From positions 124,001-188,000 of the forward strand of contig JALMLS010000213.1 in assembly GCA_038496445.1 (NCBI GenBank): a stretch of DNA of 64,000 bases. The letters run 5' to 3'. Positions 40,945-64,000 of the stretch are shown here, piece by piece. Source of the DNA: Trichosphaerium sp. ATCC 40318 (Eukaryota; Protista; Tubulinea). The translations under genes were made by a program, and so were the position numbers. Below the pieces are notes generated by a model. That model was not told where the DNA came from, made no database searches, and saw nothing but the letters and a program-made list of their open reading frames with translations. Each line of letters begins with the position of its first letter. The first letter of the stretch is position 1.

Positions 40945-41956
40945 TTATTTATGAAAACGAGAAAACATACAATGCATCTCCAAGTTGTCGTTCTCAAAAA
41001 TTTCTTCTAATTCGAATGTGATTGCCCCTGGTTTTACCTTTGCTAGGAACTTATTGGGTCCACACAGATGATGGCTTATACTTGTCTCAGAGAGCTTGAC
41101 ATCCTTTGATTCATGGATAGTTGTAGACGCGTCAAACTCTGCTTGAGATACCTTTGTTGATATAAACACGTTTTCTGAAGAGAAGATCTTCATTCGACGC
41201 ACCTCTTTGACATTGTAGATTAACGTGCATATAACAGGATAAAAGTCATCTTCTATTTCGGTTGTATACACCATGTTATTCACAATACAATTGTATTTGC
41301 TTCCATTTCGTTTATACGAACCGGTTATGTCATACGACATTGTATGAGGGATAGGCCAGTCATCGCTTTCATCTTCAAACGTTTTTAGCCTAAACGTCTT
41401 CTTTTTTGGTACCAGGACAAGCGAATACTCTGTCGATAGATTTCCCTTGCGACAGTAACGTATTGCTGATCGAAGAAGCGTCATAGTACTAGTCAGCTTA
41501 ATTATGGACTGCAAAACTTTCTCTGAAAATGGAGTCACTGAGTTTAAGGCCTCTCAAACACAGACAATGAGAAATGATAATTTATTGGTACCCATGTCTA
41601 TTATACAAGCTGTTGACACATTATATTCCAACAGCACTTCCTCTGCGAGCGATTGGAAATGGTTGCATTGACGGATTCGCCGGAGATTGGTCATGTTTAT
41701 TAAAAAGCTTCATTCTCTCTGATACGGACGTTAATTTTTTGTTGAGCTCCTTTTTATAGTCCCATTTGTTTAAATCTTCTATAGAATGATCGCATGCGTA
41801 TTTTGATGTGTACAAGTCCCTCCATAGACGATTATCTCTTAAATCATGTTTAAATGTCTTGCAAGTACGTATCAATGCTGCTGTTGATACCCAAGGGCTT
41901 TTACGGTACAGGATTATCTTTCTTATGACTTCAATTGGCAAGTCCGTTATGCTCAT
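40945..41956 (-). CDS. F-box protein; ORFs 41621-41956 and 40945-41538 probably form one gene (join uncertain)
   Basis: MSITDLPIEVIRKII...LIRTCKTF...DNRLWRDLY; a GT-AG intron (gtacc...ctcag) leads into the ATG-less start of the 197-aa ORF. Confidence 0.6.
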
Positions 41957-42425
41957 GGTGATTGTTTTGTAAATGTGAATAGGTGCCAGATTTTTTTTGA
42001 CGAAAAAAGACGATTGTTGTGACACTGTTTTCTGAATAAAATACACACCTAGTAATAAGAGTTCAACGAAGCAAGCGAAAAGCTATCAGCCTGATGAGTC
42101 GTGAAGTTACAGGAAACGTCAAGCAATGTAGTACTTTTTTTGTTGTCAATCACATGCTCATACACGTTTAAAGGAGCGACAAAGTCTCAGCATAAATCTC
42201 TGTTTTATAATCAATCTTATAGATGATAGACATATATCTATGGCGGTTACGGACAAGCCACGCTATACTACTTGCCCTAAGCTACAAGTTAGCGCTTTCG
42301 TTGGTGAAATAGGATGAGTTGTTACTTTACTTGCATAGAGGTGTATTTTATGAACGCCTTTCATTGATTCCTTTATCAGTAACTAAAGTGTTGCTGAGGT
42401 CAATAGCAAAGTGCCTTAACACCTT

Positions 42426-46317: not shown

Positions 46318-49058
46318 ATGGCTGCAAACAACAAAGAGCAAGCTGACTGTATCCACTAAACTACTAACGCGTTCAATTGAATTTTGCGCGCTCTTATTTG
46401 CATTTAAACCAACTTGAAACAGATTATTTGTAATCCACACCTTTTTCGTTCAAAAGCGGGTGAATCTTGACTTTTGCCGTCATACTACGGTATTGCGCTC
46501 TTCTAATTAATAACTTTTTTTCCTTGACTTCACAGTCATAAAATTCTTATCCACAACGCTACTACCAAACGAAGAAAGCGCAACAGATGACGCACCAGAG
46601 CAACAATATCCTCCAAACGTGCGTAATTTATTGTTTTTGTTTGATTAGCCAACAGATCGTTTTAAGGCTACCGGACAGCGTCACCAAAACGGAAACGAGA
46701 CTCAAAACAGCAACGTAAATATTCAAGGGCAATTCCAAGGCTATCTTCCACAACGTACCTAATGCCTTTTTCTGTGGTTTGCAAAACCGTAACGACGTTT
46801 TAGAAAATACCGACGTGTCGTATAGAAATCCTACAAATGCAGTAAACCATCAACAGGTACAAAGAGAAATTTAGAAAAAGTTTCAAAAAACCAGAAAAAA
46901 AAACCCAAAAAAAAAACCGTGACAGTGGCTTTAAACTATGAAATACAAATTGCCATTGAAACAATCAAAATGCGCTTTTAAAAATTATTTACACTTTCGG
47001 TTATTTTCATCAAAATGTAAGCGTGTCATTGACGTATGTCGTAACGGTTTTTTTTTTTCTTTCATCAATCTTGCATTTTTATTTTTGAATCAAAAATATT
47101 CGTATCCTAAAAGCCACAGAATGATATGTCTCAAATGTACAGAATGCCTAACGATGGTGGTATGTTTCAAGATCCAAGATACAGAGATCCTTCTTTTATG
47201 AATGTACACGATCCATATCAGCACGTATCTCCACAAGAAGAAGCTAAATTTGTACAAAACTTTGCAGTTAGTGGCGCACCGCCACCACAATTCATGGGAT
47301 ACAATTGGAATTTTCAACACCCTTTCGGTGGACTTCCTCCACCACAAGACTCTCGTCTGTTTAATCCTCAGAATGGTATGGGTATGGGCGGTATGTTTAC
47401 ACCACAAGGCGCAATGCCTCCTTACGGTAGACAACAAGATTTTGGACGACCAGTTTTTGCCAACTACGCTCCTCCAATGCCTGGTCAAGATGATCGAGCA
47501 CATCAAATGTATGCTCCTGGCGTGCCTGGACTTCAACAGATGGCACCTATGCAACCTAATATGCAAATGAAAATGCCAATTGGACAACCACAAAATGGTC
47601 AAACACAACCTTCTTCACAGGCTCCTGCTCCTACACAAAAGAATAATGGGTCTGCGCAACAGAAAGTAGCAAGTCAACCTCCAAAGAGAACAAATGTTGC
47701 TCCTACAGCGACTAGAGACGTACAAACAAAGGCGCCATTGCCAAAACAAAAAAATGTTGGTGCTGCTCAAAAACCTCGTACACAACAACGTGCTGCAACT
47801 AGTAAACCTGAAGCATTGCATTTTGGTGTTGCCAACATGTCTATTCAAGATAGTAATCAAAAAGACGTTCAAAAACCGAAAGCGCAACCACCGCGTAATA
47901 CACAAACCGCTACTCGCCCTTCTAACGCGAAGAGAAACACTACAAATCAACAAAAACCAAAACCACAGCCAGCAGCAAAGCCTGCTGCTGCACGTTCATG
48001 GGCATCTATCGCGCGAAAGAACCCTGGAAAAGGACCAATGCATCAACCACCACGCAACCCAATGCTAAAGCAAATGCCAGCAAAGAAAAAGAGACCACTA
48101 GCAGCCCCACAGGTAAATTCATCTTTTTTGTCTCTACTTTTTTTCCTCAGTGCCTAATGCTACTGATGACTCGAGCTAACGGTCGTATGGTATTGTTTAC
48201 TTTTGGTTTTGACTCTTCGCTCTTTTTTGTAGGCTCGCGATACTACAAAACGTTACAACAGCAATAATACTACAGCTCCGCAATCAAATGGCTCATATGA
48301 GAACAGCACTCTACCAAAAGAACTATTACAGAGCGTAAACAGCTCCTCTTTTGATCATAGACCAAAGTACGCTCGTTTTTTTGTAATCAAGTCGTATTCA
48401 GAGGATGACGTTCATAAATGTATCAAAGTACGTTAAAAAGAACCTCATAACGTATTGAGAATTGTTGCTGATTTTTCACTCAAATTAGTATTCAATTTGG
48501 GCAAGTACAGATAGTGGTAATAGGCGCTTGGATACTGCATTTAGGGAATCAGCGAGTAAGGGACCTATTTATTTGTTTTTTTCCGTGAACGCTTCTGGAC
48601 AATTTTGTGGCATGGCAGAGATGAAATCGCCTGTAGACTACGCTAAGAAGTGCTCTTTATGGACTCAAGATAAATGGAATGGTCAGTTTACAGTAGAATG
48701 GAAGTTCATAAAAGATATTCCCAATTCTCAGTTTAGACACATTCGATTACCGTATCCTTCTCGCTGCCCTTGTTTTCCTTTTTTCACTCTACAATTTTTT
48801 TTCAAACCCTTCTTCCTTGACCCTATCTAAAGAAACAACGATAACAAACCTGTAACAAACTCTCGTGATACACAAGAAGTACTACTTGATCCTGGTAGAG
48901 AGATTTTAAAGACTTTCAAACAGTATAACTCTAAGACTTCTATTCTCGATGATTTTGCTTGGTATGATAGGCGTCAAGAATTTATGATTGGTAAAAAGAA
49001 AGAACAGCAAAATTCCGAGGCAAACGGACATTCTGACGTACGTCATACCTCAACTTAA
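46318..49058 (+). CDS. YTH-domain m6A reader, YTHDF/ECT-like
   Basis: [66 protein letters not shown]; P/Q/G/M-rich low-complexity N-half; cage tryptophans present. Confidence 0.95.
46349..46535 (+). other. Probable U12-type intron
   Basis: Donor GTATCCAC, branch site TTCCTTGAC at 46520-46528, close to the CAG acceptor; restores the frame. Confidence 0.65.
48752..48832 (+). other. U12-type (minor spliceosome) GT-AG intron
   Basis: Donor GTATCCTTC, branch site TTCCTTGAC at 48813-48821, no polypyrimidine tract; removal gives conserved RHIRLPNNDNKPV. Confidence 0.88.
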
Positions 49059-49965: not shown

Positions 49966-52900
49966 ATGAACTTGTGGACATCATACGTTGGCTTTCTAGC
50001 CTGGATACAGAAAATAATCGAAAAGGGTTTTAGACGCGTTGGCGCTATTAACTATGACTACAGTTGGGTTGTTATACTATGTACACTCATTTTCTGCCTT
50101 ATTGTGAGCCTTGGACTTCTTCGTTTCAACGAGGAGACAGCTGCAGAAAAATTATGGCTTCCACAGAACTCTCAAGCTATAAAGGATAAGGTACAATGTT
50201 TTATTTGATAAAACGTATTGAAAACCTATTTCTCCATTTTCCTTTTTCCGCTTCGGACGCCTGCTAATACATTTACAGAGGGTAGTAGAAGCCGCATATG
50301 GCTTTAACTCGCGTCCGAATCAACTTTTCATCACATTAAAGAACGAAGGCGATTTATTAGCTGACAGGAACGCTTTGCTTGAAATACAGAAGTTGCACGT
50401 CGCAATAGCGAATACCTCCGTCGAAGTAAACGGAAGACAATACAAATACGCCGATGTTTGCACTGTAGTGACAGGTGGCACTGAATGTAATATTATTTCG
50501 TACGTTTGATTACAAATCACATTCGTAGCGACGTTTTCTCTTTTTCTAACTTCCTATTCAAGGCCTCTAGGGTACTGGAACTTTAACGAGGCAGATATTA
50601 TCGCTGATGAAGGAAATTACAATGCTACAATACAAGCAGGCGGCACTTACCCTTCCGGAGGTCGTATTGCTAGATCTACAGTCATAGCAGGCGTTGGAAT
50701 GGAAAACGGAGCTATTTCTACAGCTAGAGCCGTTCAATTGATTTATTTCTTGCAACCAGAGGATACTTTAGACTTGTCTGTATCGACTCTATGGGAGAAA
50801 GATGTATTTCTTGTACGTCAAAGCATTTTTTAACAAAAGTTGGTTTTTTGCTTACGAATCGCGTAGAAATTTGCTGCCGCTGATGATTTTGAATACATTA
50901 CAGTCGTTCGTCGTGCTGCATCAAGTTTTGATGAAGAATTGAGCAGTTCCGTTTCAGGAGATATTACTTTCTTTGCTGCCGCTATCGTCCTTATTGTAGT
51001 GTATGCATCTCTTATGCTAAGCAGATGGAACTGGACTGGCACCAGAATAATTGCTGCCAACATCGGATTCGTACGATCTTTGAAAAACACGTTTTTTTGA
51101 TACAGTTACTAATTATAATTGTTTAGTTGAGTGTCGGTTTATCAATCCTAGTTTCATTCGGATTATCGAGCCTTTTCGGCGTATTCTTCACATCTTTAGT
51201 TTCTATCATGCCTTTTATTCTTATTGGTGTTGGTAAGTGCTTTGAACTCGAACAAGAAGAAAAACGTGTTTGAATACAAGTGTTTTTTTTTTGGTTTCTA
51301 ATCTTCTTTTTTTACCAGGTATGGACAACGTCTTTGTTCTTGTAGATGCTTTTGATAGAACACCTGCTAAATGGGATACACGTAAAAGAATGGTTACTGC
51401 ATTAGGAGTAGCTGGTGGATCCATAATTGTAACATCTTTGACGGATGTCGCCGCTTTTCTACTTGGAACTCTCACAACGCTTCCAGCAATTCGATCTTTC
51501 TGTATCTACGCTGCAATCGGTGTTGGATTCAGTTTCATTTCCCATATCACCTTCTTCACTGCTTGGTTTTGTATACTCGAACGTGCAGCTGCAGCTGGTA
51601 GTGTAGAACTCGTCCCTTGCATCAAACAAAAAGACCAAGACATTCTTGACCAAAGAGTAAAGTCAAAGAGTGGTACGTCCTTCTTTTTTGTCTATCGCAA
51701 TAGCCACTTCAAAATCACGTGGTATTATTTGATACTAGTATCAATTTACTTACTGGTTTGAAACAGGTTCTATGTGGATCAGTTGGTTTATTAAGAAGTA
51801 CTACGCTCCTTTCTTGATGAAATTGCCAGTAAGAATCTGTGTTATCATTTTGACAGCTATCATTCTTGGTGTTGCTATCTACTTTACAACAACTCTCGAT
51901 CAAGGACTTCCTCTTGAAGATTTAGCTCCAGATGATAGCTACTTGCAAGACTTTTATACAATAGAATCACGATATTTTGAAGAGATTGGTCAAAGAGTTT
52001 TCCTCTATGTTGGAGAAGTTGACTACTTTTCAACTGAGGAACAAAATCGAATCATAGATCAAACGCAGCTATTATTCAACCTGAAATGGGTAGAGAAAAC
52101 GACTGGTAAGTCGTTAATATAACCTTTTATAAAGTCTTAACATTCTACTACAGGCTACGCTTCATGGCTTGAAGACTTTTTGGCTCACTTAAACGCAACC
52201 AATTTTACACCTGCAAACGAAACAGAATTTTATGATAGGTTGTTTAATACCTTCCTCAAGTCTCCACAAGGAGGTCAGTACAGTGTAAACGTAGTCCGTA
52301 AGTATAAACAGCATGCTATTACTCATCCAGAAGACTAACATATCTCTATAGCAACTGCTGACGGCCTTCGTATTCTTAACTCGAGAGTTCAATTTTTTTA
52401 CAATGCAGCTTCGACCATCAGAGAAAATGATGTGGACGTTCTCGATGATTCTCGTGAAGTTGTTATCTACAATAACATGTTTGTTTATAACTTCCAAATG
52501 GACTTCTGGGAACAATCAAAGGTTATACCTACAGAAGCATACACAAATCTTGCTTTAGCTGGTCTTGGTGTGTTTATAATTTCGAACGTTTTGCTTGCAA
52601 ATCCACTTCTTGCTGTTTATGTTATCTTCTGCTTGCTCATGGTACGTCCATTTTATGATCCTATTAATACCTTGGCATTGTCTTACTCTAAGTTTAGATT
52701 GATATTGATATTTTGGGCTTAATGGCATTGTGGAGCGTTAAACTTAACACAATTTCTGTTGTAAATCTTGTAATGGCAATCGGCTTCTCTTTTGATTATG
52801 TTGGCCATTTAGCACATGCTTTTATTGTAGCCAAAGGAACAAGAGTTGAACGCGTAAAAAAGGCATTGGTTAATCTCGGTGCATCAATTTTTAACGGAGG

Positions 52901-57395: not shown

Positions 57396-58230
57396 ATGTC
57401 TTTTAAACAACACTTCAGGTTAAAACGTAAGTTACAATAATAACATCTACTTCTGACTGTCGTAGGCTTTTTTAAGAGGAGTAAACGCTCTAAATCGGAG
57501 GGTTACCTGGCGGGTATAGAGCGCACGTCTCTTATAAATCCTACAGCTCCAGCGTTAGGGACTTTTGATGAGTACGTTAAAAGTTCCTTGTTTTTTACGA
57601 TACCCGTGTACCAACGACTTTGTTTAGTAGCCTCTCGGTGACAACAGATGATTCTGAAAGTCTAAGCGCTATTGAGAAGCTTGGGAGCGAGTACTGTTGG
57701 GAAGATCTGTGGGAGGATCCCAATTTATTTGCAAAATTTCGCTTTTATGTTTACGCCAAGCAAGCAAATGAAAACCTCTCCTTCTTGACTGCAGTAGGTG
57801 AGTCATACACTTTGTTGCACATTCCGAGCTGTGACTTTATCTAACAAGTTATTTATAGAACTGTACAGGAGCACTAGTAAAGCCAAGGAAAGGCGAGAGT
57901 TGGGTGAGAAAATCTTCAGGGATTGGGTGAACCTTGACACAGCAAGAGAGCCTGTCAACATTTCCCATCAACAACGATTGGTACGTACATTATATCACGT
58001 GATATGTCACGTGCTTACCCCGGTTATAGAGCATTGAGAGTAACTACACTATCGGCAATCGGGCTTTGTTTGAAGAAGCAAGAGAAGATATTATAAGGAT
58101 GCTCAAGTATGACTTGTTCTTGGAGTTCTTGTACGGTGGCGAGAAACTGAGGAAATCAAAAACAGCCAAATATAAAAAACTGACGCTTGAACGCTACCGC
58201 ATACTGAATGGAAGGCGAGTGAGTGTGTGA
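57396..58230 (+). CDS. Small RGS-domain protein
   Basis: FRFYVYAKQANENLSFLTAVELYR...IFRDWV...EPVNIS...LFEEAREDIIRMLKYDLFLEFL. Confidence 0.85.
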
Positions 58231-58464: not shown

Positions 58465-61400
58465 ATGGATTCATCAGAGGAGCTTGAAGAATATACTCTA
58501 GACGAGTTAGAAGCAATAGCAAAATGCCAAGCTGTAAGTCGCGGGTTCTTGGCAAGAAAGAGATACAAACGCAGGGGCAAGTGCTTAAAAATAAGAACCT
58601 AGAAATAGTCATATTCCTTTATTTCGAACTCCAACCCTCTATTTACGCGGTTGTATAGTTAAACAAGCTGAACGGCGTACAAACATTGCTCGTGAGGTTT
58701 ACGAAACGGAGAGGTCTTACGTCAAATCATTAAGTAAAGTAATAGAGGTATGTAAAACGGCGCTGAGGTGTACGTTAGTTGTAGTATTTACTTTTTTAGC
58801 AATACATGGCTCCTTTACAAACGAGTCATCAACACTTGCTTACCAGGGATCAATTCAAGGCTATATTCAGCGAGATACAGGTTATTCACGCTTATTCGGC
58901 AAGGTACACAAAAATCTCCAAAGTAATAACGCTTATGACAGCCTCCACGCTTTGAAAACCACCTATAAACCATTTTTGGCATATAAAACGATTTCGACGT
59001 CTTTGTTAGCGAAATACGGACATTACTTTTTTAACTCATTTCTGTCAGGTTTGAAGAGCAGCTGGCTGAAAGAATAAAGGATTGGGGACCTCATCAAGTG
59101 TTGGGTGACTGCTTTCTTAAAACGGCACGGAGATAGAAAACAATAGAATGACGTTATCTGATTTTATCTATCCTCTAGATGGCTTTTTTGAAGGTTTATG
59201 GTCAGTATTGTAATAAATATGATACTTGTATGGTTATTCTTGCTGAAACAAAAGCCAATAACAGAGATTTTGCTACTTGGTTAAAGGTACGCATGCACTG
59301 ATTTTTTTGATTTTTTTCAATTTGAAATTATTATTTTTGGAAGTTTGCTTTTTTTGAAAGTTCGCTGAAGCGCCAATTAATGTGTTAATAGGAACAAGAG
59401 AATATCACTGGTGTTGCTATACCATTAGAAACCTATTTGATTCAACCAGTTCAACGTGTACCTCGCTATGCGTTACTCCTTGAGGTAACAAATGCGAAGT
59501 TTATTCTTTTTTTTTTTTTGAGTAAAGGAAAAATAATGTTTTTTATCTGAATTTTTTGTTCTGTAGCAACTACTTAAAAACACTTGGGAGGATCATGGTG
59601 ACAGAGAATCTATTAATTTATCGTGTGTCAAAGTAAGGACACTTGCGAAGGAAATCAATGAAAAGAAGAGAGCAAACGAGAACTTAGCTAAACGAGGTAC
59701 CTTATTATTTATTTTTTTTTGGTTTCCTTATGACACCATCTGACGTTCTACTCTAGCACAAATTTACAACGACCTCATTGGTATAGATGTATGTTTTTTT
59801 TAATTATCTTTTGATTGGTTTTGTTGTGTGCTTATAGTTTGCTATAGAATAAGGATAAACAGGATCTTTTAATGAATCGTAAAGAACCTCGTTGGTTCTA
59901 TGGTGAAGGACGTGTTACACGTTATGTGAAAGGGGCAACAACGAAATTCACTCTTTTTGTACTTTCTGGAGTTCTTGTTTGGACTAAAAAAAAGAAACAA
60001 GAGGGGGATGTTGTTTATGAGTTTAAAGATCGTACAGACTTGGTACGAGATGATGATTTGGAGTTTAAAATATTAGAACTATATGGTAAGTGGTTATTGA
60101 TAAGAGTTGTACACGTCAGGCGTGTCCAGGTATTTTACGACTTCATGTTTGACACATTTGTTTATAGATCACCGTAAAGTTGTTCATATTGCGTCTTCTA
60201 AGGAAGAAGTTGCTATGTTTCGTAGTGAATCAGAGGAAGAAACTCAAGAGTGGTTTAAATTTGTACAAGCAGCATACAGTGGTCAAAGTACGTGTAACAC
60301 AAAAAACCCCCAAGTTGCTGGCATTTTGTTGCCATCCAGTTTTTGTCCATTCTATTTTTTTGTTAACAGTTTTTAGTTATCTCTGATGACGATGATGATA
60401 GCTCATCAAATGAAAGTGCTAAAAAGAAAGTAATGGAGAGCCGTGCAAAGAAGATTATTGCTGATGCTCAAGTTTGGAAACCTTTAAAGAGACCACCATC
60501 AATGTCATTAAATGAGATGCGTGCTTTAAAGAAAGAAGAAGAGCGTCTCTCAGCGTTACAACTTCAAGATGAAACAAGGAAGATATCTGCTATTATTAAA
60601 GTAGAAAAGTTAATGAAGCAGTGGGAGGATACAGACCAGTCTAATGATTTGACGACATACAAACCTGCAGGGTACGTTTTTTTGGATTTTTTTGAGGTCA
60701 AACATAAAATTCTTAAGCTCACTACTTCTTACTCAGCTCTCCTGATAAGTTTTGGAATACGTACCCAGATAAAGCATTCAAGCATATACAAGAATTAACA
60801 CAACTATTGGCTAATTCTAATCTCTCATGGGATACTCATGAGTCTGTTGTTATTGGGACACAAGGGAGTGGTCAGCAACAAGTTATTGAGATGATACTTG
60901 GACATACTTTCTCCTCTTATCGTATCCTTTCTTTTTCTTATTTTTTCGAACTTTGATGTGTACTATATGCTTAGTTTGTCATTGACAGTTCTTTTATTTT
61001 TCTTTGACCTCTTAGCCGCACTCAGACGTCCATTGTATTTACATTTAATTCCAAATTCTCTTTATTCTGAACCTAAGATTACTATGCTTCGTGATACTCT
61101 TGAACAAAAAGTAGAAGGTGCAGAGTCTTCTAGAAACCTTGATTTAAAGGCTACAGATGTATCCAAGTACTTAAAGTGCGTTAAAGACGAGCTCCTTTTT
61201 CATTTTAGTTTCAACTTATAACTTATTATATTTCAATAGAAATCGCAATAGGCGGTATAGTTCTGAACCTGTACATATCCTCTACGAACTAAAGAATGTA
61301 TTTCCTGCTACAATTATTGATACACCGCCTCTAGAGGATTTTTTTCTAACAGATGGTGGTATTACTAGTAACGAAGTTACAAAGGTAAACAAACCATTCT

Positions 61401-64000
61401 TATTGACCAAATATTATTTTTTCCCCTCCTATGTATTTCAGGACTTCAAAGAAAGCCAGTTAGACTCAAGTGTTATTCTTTGTTATATTTCGCTAACGGC
61501 TTGTTTAAGGATAAATCTAGATTGTTGTTATACTTTGAATCAAAGAAGGAGCCTTCGTTATTATCAATGAACAGTGTTATTGGAAAGATGGATCCTAACT
61601 CTACACGCTCAATCTGGATACAAACACAACTGGATTACGTCCTTTCAAACATAACGTATGTCCTGTTACTAAAACATAACTAATAATCAAAAAAGGGATA
61701 AATCCACAGTAGACAGATACTTTAAACGTGCTGTACCAGCACTTAAAGAAGTAAGATAGAATGTGCTAGTTTTTTATTGATGTCTTAATAGTTTTACGTC
61801 ACTCCTCTTAGTGGCGCTACAAGGATGAGAGGTCGTGTATCTACTACTGATTATAGAAGAGTATCATTACAAGCATATTTAAGAGACTTGAACTCTATTA
61901 ATGCCTTGGAAGCACAAAAACACATTTTTGATGAAAGGTAAAATAATGTCTACTTTGAAATCATCTTATTTGCTTATTAGTTGCGCTCCATATGTTGGTG
62001 TACCTAATTTTAGACGTTATTACTTCCGTCTGCTATTCCGACACTATGTGTCTCAACTTGAGCGAAAACAATCTGAACTAGAAGCTATTGCGTTGAAGCA
62101 CAAAACACTTGTTTCTGACATTGACTCTTTTTTGGCACAACTTAATGTATCTGTCCTTCGTCGGCATACAATTTGTTTTTGCACTTCTTATCTGGATATT
62201 TTCCGTCAACTCTTGACTGGTAGTGCATCTATAGATGTAAATCTATACGGTCAAACAATAGAAGAAGAAAAAGCAGCTTCAAGTATGTTTTTGTTTTTTT
62301 TCACAACATTTTAGTTAATTTATGTCTTATCCTTGTCCTTTAGACTATCGTGGTTGGGTCAATTCCATGAATGAACCTATAAATCCTCGGCGTGCTAGAG
62401 GAAAAGCAATTCCAATGCAAGACGTTCGAGTCTATGGTAACTTATTTCAGATCTTTCTGGTAATTGTTATCTTACTATTTTTTAAATAGGTTCAGCACAA
62501 GTGTTCCGTCTCTTAGAGGTATTTAGTTCAGTAGTAGAAGGCGTAGAACTGCGTCGTCTTACATCTACAGATTACGTTTCTTTGGTTGGTATAAACAAAC
62601 CAACCTTTGAAGGTTTGATAGACGCTGTAAGTGAAATCAATGCAAATAATTTTTTTCTTATATCTTCTGTTTAGGCTCTTTGTTGGGTAGAAACCCAGTC
62701 AATGCAATTACTTGCCCCTTTAGCTGGACAATTACTTGATAGAATAGTAGAGATGATTACAAGGCTATTAAATATAACAGAGGGCGAGTTGAGTATGAGA
62801 TATAAGAGGGATACAACGTCTAGTACTTTTAGCTTTAATCAAGCTGATGTTCTAGTACATGCACCTTCTCTCACTGGCGATATTAGTCTCTTAATTAGGA
62901 GTACTCTAGATGTACGTTCGCATACTCATAACTTATGTCAACATCCACAAGAGCTTGTCACAAGAGCGGTGATATGCGTGATAAACAACACTTTGTACAT
63001 TCTATTACTATTTTGTTAACCTAATTGTTTAGGCACTTAAAATGGAATGCTCTGTTCGTTGCAGTAGGGCTTTACAAGAGTTTTCTACTATTGATCCTGA
63101 GTGGATTCAGGTTGATGAAGCATTGTACGTTCAAGTTGTTATTTCTTTTTTTTTTAATTACTAATGTTCGACAGAGAACGTATGAGCTTTGTTAGTAAAG
63201 AAGGCGCTCTTCAGAGGCTTGCATCAAATATTTTTATGCAAATTAAAAAACACTACATACAACAAATCACATTGAGTATTTATGAAATATTTATTGAAAG
63301 AGGGTACGTGATGAAACTGACCAAGCTAAATCATTTCGGTTTTTGTTCTTTTTTTTTTTGGAATTATGCTTTGCTTGTCTTTTTACGACCTTCATTTTTA
63401 TACTCTGGTAAAATAGAGTTATTTTGAGGGTCACGTGATGTAAACCAAATTATATTTTTAGCGAGCTTGTACTTCCCTTGAGTAAGAGTTTAAAACTGAC
63501 TTTATTTTTTTAGGTGTGAACGTATTTCAAGGGCAGTTATTACTGCTGTTTCTGGATTCCCTGATAGACAATTACTCAACCTATTCCAAGGTGAAAGACT
63601 AAAAATGAAGTTGAAACAAAGGCGTCAAGTAGAACACGAGGCGTTCAAGACATCAACTGCTACTGCTGCTCAGTTTAAAGACTGTTCGAAGAAATTTGCA
63701 AACTGTCATATGTCACCTTTGTGTATTAATAGAAACACGATTATTGAGAGAAATATGAATGCTCCAAACCTGGAAGCATTAGTTCCTCGTATGGCAACTA
63801 ATCACCGACGTCTCAGCTCAGGTTTTCCAGGTGGTAAACGTACGTTAAAAGAGAGAAAAACAATTTTTTTTTTGTTCTCTTTTTGCAGCACGTGTGGTTA
63901 TTGGATTCGACTGATTTTTCTTTTTTACATTAGGTGCACATAGTAGAGTCCGTTCTGCAGCTTTTAAGTCTCGTGATCAGAGATCTTTTACTATTACAGC
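58465..64000 (+). CDS. IQ-RhoGEF(DH)-PH protein fused to a degenerate DRP5/Dlp-type dynamin domain; runs off the window
   Basis: IQ CQAVSRGFLARKRY; DH EVYETERSYVKSL...LIQPVQRVPRYALLL; PH EEETQEWFKFV; dynamin-like VVIGTQGSGQQ, LRRPL, IIDTPP, GQTIEEEK, VYGSAQVFRLL. Confidence 0.85.
60922..61015 (+). other. U12-type GT-AG intron
   Basis: Perfect donor GTATCCTTT; TTCTTTGAC at 61000-61008 just before TAG; restores SSY-P-ALRRPL. Confidence 0.8.

Follow-up and report, generated by a model that had tools for sequence, protein, structure and literature searches.

Can a RhoGEF and a dynamin-like protein be encoded as a single polypeptide, and what would a dynamin module contribute to it once its nucleotide-binding motifs have been replaced? 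This question is raised by the 3' end of a 64,000-nucleotide (nt) stretch of DNA from Trichosphaerium sp. ATCC 40318 (contig JALMLS010000213.1, positions 124,001 to 188,000; hereafter the window, numbered from its first letter), where a gene with its start codon at position 58465 runs to the window end and beyond. We consider it reasonably likely that this is one gene of at least 25 exons, coding for more than 1219 amino acids (aa), in which an IQ-DH-PH RhoGEF, a guanine nucleotide exchange factor (GEF) of the Rho family, is followed by a charged linker of about 100 aa and by a full dynamin module that, with its G domain dead, would act as an assembly and targeting scaffold.

The gene model and its RhoGEF half

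The gene was modelled by hand and the model checked by script. It comprises 25 exons from the ATG at 58465 to the window end and is stop-free over 1219 codons. The 24 introns measure 40-210 nt; 22 of them are GT-AG and two GC-AG, and an in-frame splice solution is present at 24/24. The most frequent donor in the gene is GTACGT, used by 7/24 introns. The features of the model are as follows.

58465-58576 (+): exon 1, with the start codon and the IQ calmodulin-binding motif; followed by a GC-AG intron (58577-58658)
58659-58747, 58800-58903, 59049-59124, 59179-59286, 59392-59484, 59567-59696 (+): exons 2-7, DH RhoGEF domain
59757-59788, 59848-60085, 60168-60287 (+): exons 8-10, probable PH domain
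60288-60376 (+): intron 10, the predicted fusion junction, GTACGT...TTTTTAG, 89 nt, phase 1
60377-60671 (+): exon 11, an acidic, serine-rich stretch and then a linker of about 100 aa, charged and probably helical; contains Met 60433
60737-60921 (+): exon 12, N-terminal dynamin helix and degenerate G1 (P-loop) GTQGSGQQ
61016-61175 (+): exon 13, degenerate G2 (switch I), ALRRPL replacing TRRPL
61240-61358 (+) in model A, with the 3' end at 61384 in model B: exon 14, degenerate G3, IIDTPP replacing DLPG
61442-61655 (+): exon 15, degenerate G4, TQLD replacing TKxD, with the DPxxxR[ST]I context before it
61696-61750, 61792-61937 (+): exons 16-17, end of the G domain
61981-62282, 62344-62436, 62490-62626, 62675-62911, 63033-63124, 63175-63303 (+): exons 18-23, helical stalk (middle-domain-like)
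63514-63839, 63934-64000 and beyond (+): exons 24-25, GED-like helix and basic, serine-rich tail; the gene passes the window end

Pfam scans were run on single exons. At this scale, the IQ motif (PF00612) was detected at residues 16-35 of exon 1 with 27.0 bits (cut-off 20.3; E-value (E) = 3e-6). The RhoGEF family (PF00621) matched five of the six DH exons in genomic order, at profile positions 1-20, 23-52, 84-117, 128-149, and 150-180, and these five matches together span nearly the whole DH domain. Among them, exon 6 alone passes the PF00621 gathering score (29.1 versus 27.6 bits). These results bear out the IQ motif and the DH domain that a sequence-only reading of the same stretch had named. 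The PH exon yielded a weak match to PF22697, a SOS1/NGEF-like PH family (E = 0.056, on one exon); by eye, the region lies directly after the DH domain and shows the usual strands followed by a C-terminal helix. Exons 8-10 are therefore listed as the probable PH domain paired with DH. Moreover, the IQ motif suggests that the GEF is under calmodulin control.

Two introns in this half depart from the GT-AG rule. Intron 1 (58577-58658) must be GC-AG, with the donor GCAAGT at 58577, because the IQ match crosses an internal GTAAGT to residue 35 and the sole in-frame donor is the one at 58577. Intron 4 (59125-59178) is possibly GC-AG as well (donor GCACGG at 59125); an alternative GT donor at 59097 would remove a conserved segment of the DH domain. 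Of note, two GC-AG introns within one gene would be unusually many.

The dynamin-like module and its G motifs

To place the second half, we searched metagenomes and metatranscriptomes with a degenerate DNA pattern based on the P-loop of canonical dynamins. This pattern led to 118 loci and from these to 34 full-length canonical dynamin open reading frames (ORFs), which make up a profile of 695 positions. Using hmmsearch with the spliced model against this profile, residues 503-610 (G1 to G3) fell on positions 52-168 (E = 1.8e-5, in a single-target test). The whole module was then compared by hhalign, and residues 476-1156 proved collinear with positions 24-662 of the 695 (probability 94.3%, E = 1.1e-7, 577 columns), running through the N-terminal helix, the G domain, the middle domain, and the GED in that order at an identity of about 15%. 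The score of the real module was 67.2, as against 17.4±3.3 for 60 shuffles (maximum 31.6), 19.5 for the reversed sequence, and 19.0 for the GEF half. Judged by these alignments, the module belongs to the dynamin/dynamin-related protein (DRP) branch, as a very divergent member. The dynamin-like character proposed for the downstream domain by the sequence-only reading thus extends over the G domain, the middle domain, and the GED.

Support is not even along the module. Taken alone, the G domain (residues 477-713, ending in exon 17) aligned with profile positions 25-261 (hhalign probability 92%, E = 6.8e-7). The stalk is supported more weakly than the G domain: by itself it reached E = 0.0086 and a probability of 4.7%, collinear and at the expected profile positions 297-655, with a score of 28.1 compared with 15.9±2.3 for shuffles, 0/80 of which reached it (z of about 5). 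In the hhalign alignment, about 35 extra aa are inserted in the stalk ahead of the YGSAQ segment. The ESM Atlas placed exon 18 among Dynamin_M clusters (0.95, 19/40 matches), with a recognition value under the reliability mark of the tool. In addition, phmmer of the G1 exon against PDB sequences returned weak matches to the P-loop region of Mgm1 and Vps1 (E 0.2-1.8). A scan of IMG/VR for the dynamin G1 motif gave no matches.

All four G motifs are altered, with the strings that had been quoted from the sequence alone. G1 (GTQGSGQQ, model residues 506-513) lies on the canonical GxQSSGKSS columns, as GTQGSGQQQ; G2 (LRRP, residues 530-533) lies on the vTRRPl columns, as ALRRPL; and G4 (TQLD, residues 673-676) lies on the columns of DP.G.RTiGVlTKlD. 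For G3 (DTPP, residues 608-611), HMMER aligns only D-T-P to the D-L-P of the profile, and the final Pro, which takes the place of the conserved Gly, comes from direct reading of the sequence. A later Gly appeared in the G3 column of one MAFFT alignment that discards insertions, and was rejected as an artefact of the method. The patterns G....GK[ST] and D.PG are both present in 34/34 canonical dynamins, and neither is present in the model.

In terms of residues, the model has lost the P-loop Lys and Ser, the switch-I Thr, the G3 Gly, and the G4 Lys and has kept the Asp in both G3 and G4. The residues flanking the motifs are conserved while those contacting the nucleotide are replaced, a pattern that, as far as sequence can tell, is usual for a pseudoenzyme and not for random decay. 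The choice of splice sites can neither alter nor restore the motifs, because each of them lies well inside an exon. With none of the four nucleotide-binding motifs left intact, the module reads most naturally as a pseudo-GTPase, and its G domain is predicted to be incapable of canonical GTP binding or hydrolysis.

We also asked to which dynamin subfamily the module might belong. The stalk segments that the sequence-only reading had picked out, GQTIEEEK and YGSAQ, exist in the model as quoted: YGQTIEEEK (residue 848), YGSAQ (residue 890), and also IIDTP are present in it and in 0/34 canonical dynamins. We take DRP5-type proteins to have IIDTPG at G3, as well as [FY]GET..(D/E)E(R/K) and (R)LYGGAQ in the stalk, although these strings are our own assumption and a literature search for them returned unrelated matches only. 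An exhaustive HMMER search of the 100-aa stalk exon 18 against 1.84 billion representative proteins found no Dlp or DRP5 protein. Because the best stalk exon has no relative among these 1.84 billion proteins, the module would be at best a very divergent member of the DRP5/ARC5/DlpA-C group. Two HMMER matches of exon 18, to a tandem-repeat ORF and to a bacterial MBG-repeat adhesin, were set aside as repetitive false positives.

One gene or two, scaffold or remnant

The link between the two halves depends on the junction after the PH exon. By direct reading, this exon ends at 60287 with the donor GTACGT in phase 1, and the acceptor TTTTTAG ends at 60376. The open frame of exon 11 joins that of the PH exon without a stop and goes on through 14 further exons to the window end. 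This is exactly what the sequence-only reading had noted, namely, an in-frame phase 1 junction at 60288-60376 that leads through an acidic stretch and, without a stop, into the dynamin-like domain. At 0.40, the T fraction of 60288-60376 is like that of the other introns (0.43) and unlike that of the exons (0.30). The stretch of 56 nt from the acceptor to Met 60433 resembles exons in composition (A-rich, T 0.27) and is open in frame, and the linker encoded by exon 11 matched no Pfam family in the single-exon scan. A poly(A) site and a new start near 60300-60433 had been named in advance as signs of separate transcripts; neither AATAAA nor ATTAAA occurs between 59213 and 60506. By contrast, the boundary with the upstream gene has a 235-nt gap, with a first AATAAA at the stop and a second 136 nt further on. 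From the gene structure, we infer one mRNA spanning the junction, and we regard a single gene from the PH to the dynamin exons as quite probable.

The locus may also be read as two adjacent genes, a small IQ-DH-PH RhoGEF that reads through 60288 to the TAG at 60374-60376 and a separate pseudo-dynamin starting at the ATG 60433. This arrangement, which we find unlikely, would suit a compact genome in which the upstream neighbour ends just 235 nt before the ATG of this gene. It could also draw on the in-frame Met at 60433 with an in-frame stop upstream at 60364. Furthermore, the case for the fusion is one of gene structure, and compatibility of phase by itself is expected by chance in about one-third of cases. 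However, a mere 56 nt would then separate the read-through stop from the next ATG, with no AATAAA or ATTAAA, whereas the true end of the upstream gene has two such signals; these 56 nt are, moreover, exon-like and open in frame. Both splice sites of the 89-nt segment fit the consensus, its composition is intron-like, and reading through it would append a hydrophobic tail of 29 residues, typical of a translated intron.

Several observations weigh against our reading of one intact fusion gene. The frame is still open at position 64000, so that the protein has at least 1219 aa, its C-terminus lies beyond the window, and the gene is incomplete here. Past the G3 exon, GTAAAC (61385) is the strongest donor and TTTCAG (61441) the strongest acceptor, but the two are mutually out of frame, and pairing 61385 with 61441 leads to a stop at 61568-61570; an in-frame join requires the weaker donor GTATTA (61359) or a purine-rich acceptor. 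Likewise, the donor GTATGT (61656) can be joined in frame only to an AAAAAG acceptor, giving a 40-nt intron, or to the acceptor at 61811, which skips a small exon. A truncated isoform or one targeted by nonsense-mediated decay, an unusual choice of splice sites, or a small assembly error is possible at these two awkward G-domain junctions. As for homology, Pfam gave no match, Dynamin_N and Dynamin_M included, for any single dynamin exon; the ESM Atlas gave none for the GED-like exon or a second stalk exon; phmmer against PDB sequences returned nothing for three other dynamin exons; and the exhaustive search with exon 18 found no true relative. No relative sharing the GEF-dynamin fusion was found either. 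Finally, the sole public run with a match (run X1, 2024) is DNA-like, with 6% of the sampled words, and contains no splice joints.

At both ambiguous junctions (61359/61385 to 61442/61456, and 61656 to 61696), each plausible choice preserves the frame, and the dynamin alignment favours the adopted model. In frame, the dynamin and GEF parts correlate in codon usage at r = 0.80, versus about 0.2 in the other two frames of the dynamin part, and codon position 1 is G-enriched only in the modelled frame. Run X1 provides a further view of the coding sequence. It gave four short contigs, 95-99% identical, over 59337-59680, 62815-62989, and 63522-63736, and we call it DNA-like because one contig retains an intron. 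Six differences were listed, two of them intronic and four coding; 4/4 coding differences are synonymous third-position changes, of which the DH domain has one and the GED-like exon 24 has three, a number too small for a dN/dS estimate. Within this sample of four, the strain differences point to purifying selection on the modelled frame. As an observation in its own right, run X1 shows that a close strain of the organism was sampled elsewhere.

These data also bear on what has become of the dynamin part. It might be a decaying remnant, a once-active gene captured by or lying beside the GEF gene and now drifting without function. The loss of all four G motifs, the strong divergence from canonical dynamins (15% identity by hhalign), the lack of detectable relatives, and the two awkward splice junctions would fit such a history. 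Nevertheless, about 850 codons over 15 exons have neither a stop nor a frameshift and share their codon usage with the GEF part. The module has also retained the residues on either side of each motif and the succession of G domain, stalk, and GED, and the strain differences are synonymous or intronic, though just four are coding. We consider decay very unlikely on this balance. At the other extreme, the module might still be an active nucleotide-dependent mechanoenzyme that binds its nucleotide in a non-canonical manner. The retained Asp residues of G3 and G4 and a G-domain scaffold that can be aligned overall speak for this possibility. Yet the substitutions take away the P-loop Lys and Ser, the switch-I Thr, the G3 Gly, and the G4 Lys together, and loss of the P-loop Lys alone abolishes nucleotide binding in dynamin, as is known from the K44A mutant. 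Retained activity is thus very improbable indeed, and a pseudo-GTPase module kept in one gene with the RhoGEF remains the reading that we prefer.

Apart from this gene, the window contains a small multi-exon gene immediately upstream (57400-58230, plus strand), RGS-like by eye, whose TGA stop is overlapped by AATAAA and lies 235 nt before the RhoGEF ATG. Pfam scans of its single exons returned nothing. RGS-RhoGEF proteins exist in animals. Here, a 5' part of the RhoGEF gene at 57400-58230 was considered and rejected, given the stop overlapped by AATAAA and a 235-nt gap that is exon-like and not intron-like, and this is probably a separate gene. Farther upstream, an exon at 51270-51758 (plus strand) matches the sterol-sensing domain (SSD; PF12349, E = 1e-27) and the Patched SSD (E = 9e-23), and is probably part of an NPC1/Patched-like gene. 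The ORF at 41624-42046 (minus strand) has a near-threshold F-box-like match (E = 1e-4), and the longest ORF of the window (47126-48157, plus strand, 343 aa) encodes a low-complexity protein rich in Pro, Gln, and Met.

Proposed role and comparison with known systems

What would such a protein do? If the GTPase no longer works, the most plausible use of the retained stalk is in assembly and targeting of the attached GEF. The dead dynamin module would no longer be a motor and would act as an assembly and targeting scaffold only. Through the stalk, the protein could form assemblies of its own or enter polymers that active dynamin-like paralogues build on a membrane. Membership in the polymer would concentrate a Ca2+/calmodulin-gated GEF at the membrane, and the concentrated GEF would switch on Rho or Rac locally. 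We infer the oligomerisation, the polymer partners, and the cellular site of the protein.

A more specific version is a fusion of the Rosetta-stone type, in which the dead subunit would co-polymerise via its stalk, at the cleavage furrow or the phagocytic cup, with active dynamin-like paralogues, of Dlp type or other, and deliver the Ca2+/calmodulin-gated GEF into the polymer. We regard this version as distinctly unlikely. DlpA-C are amoebozoan members of the DRP5A clade in which domain scanners see the G domain only, and DlpA and DlpB must hetero-oligomerise to reach the cleavage furrow, where they stabilise actin in cytokinesis (PMC8565484). Co-assembly with Dlp polymers at the furrow, which we put forward as a hypothesis and as one of several possibilities, would be coherent with this biology of DlpA and DlpB (PMC8565484). 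If it is true, membrane constriction and local actin assembly would be hard-wired in one assembly. A single GEF-dynamin polypeptide would also represent independent evidence, of the Rosetta-stone type, for an ancient and functionally important coupling of dynamin polymers to Rho-family GEFs. In addition, a dynamin-type G domain retained as a pseudoenzyme would be a rarity, and a natural test of what a GTP-free dynamin scaffold can do, for instance in assembly, targeting, or polymer capping.

The closest structural comparison is with the canonical DRPs (dynamin, Drp1/Dnm1, Vps1, Mgm1/OPA1, and plant DRP1), which have the same order of N-terminal helix, G domain, stalk, and GED. The module shares with them VV.G.Q..G...V.E...G..F, RRPL.L.L, and DP...R[ST]I...T.LD. 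Unlike them, it stands at about 15% identity, has substitutions in all of G1-G4, and reads IIDTP for [LIVM]DLPG. It has an insert of about 35 aa before YGSAQ, at a place where many canonical DRPs have GGARI. Also in contrast to canonical DRPs, the dynamin PH domain and the proline-rich domain are missing from the module, and an IQ-DH-PH RhoGEF is predicted to be fused at its N-terminus. This N-terminal half resembles Ras-GRF1/2 and multidomain amoeba RhoGEFs, where an IQ motif likewise lies directly upstream of the DH-PH cassette. Calmodulin controls Ras-GRF through its IQ motif. However, Ras-GRF has REM and Cdc25 domains, whereas the present protein has none, and its C-terminal partner is the dynamin-like module.

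Coupling of GEFs to dynamin is known from animals, where Tuba/DNMBP and intersectin-1L link a Rho-family GEF to dynamin. Likewise, Kalirin12 and ArhGEF37 are described as coupling a Rho-family GEF non-covalently to dynamin assembly (PMC2703648, PMC6526708). In these animal partnerships, the GEF binds an active dynamin via SH3 or Ig-Fn domains, whereas here both parts are predicted to form one polypeptide and the dynamin part to be catalytically dead. Our literature search found no description of a covalent DH-PH-dynamin protein and only the non-covalent partnerships of Kalirin12 and ArhGEF37. With regard to DlpA-C, the likeness lies in detection, as just their G domain is visible to scanners (PMC8565484) and the stalk of the present protein is likewise invisible to Pfam. 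As far as they have been described, Dlp and DRP5 proteins stand alone and keep their GTPase motifs, whereas here the module is predicted to be fused to a GEF and the motifs are lost.

A precedent for such a loss is found in the pG1 and pG2 domains of p190RhoGAP, in which a GTPase fold has been kept as a scaffold after loss of its motifs, inside a regulator of Rho, as proposed here. The two cases differ in the fold that was retained: pG1 and pG2 are Ras-like small-GTPase folds, whereas the protein of Trichosphaerium would have kept a large dynamin-type G domain together with its stalk.

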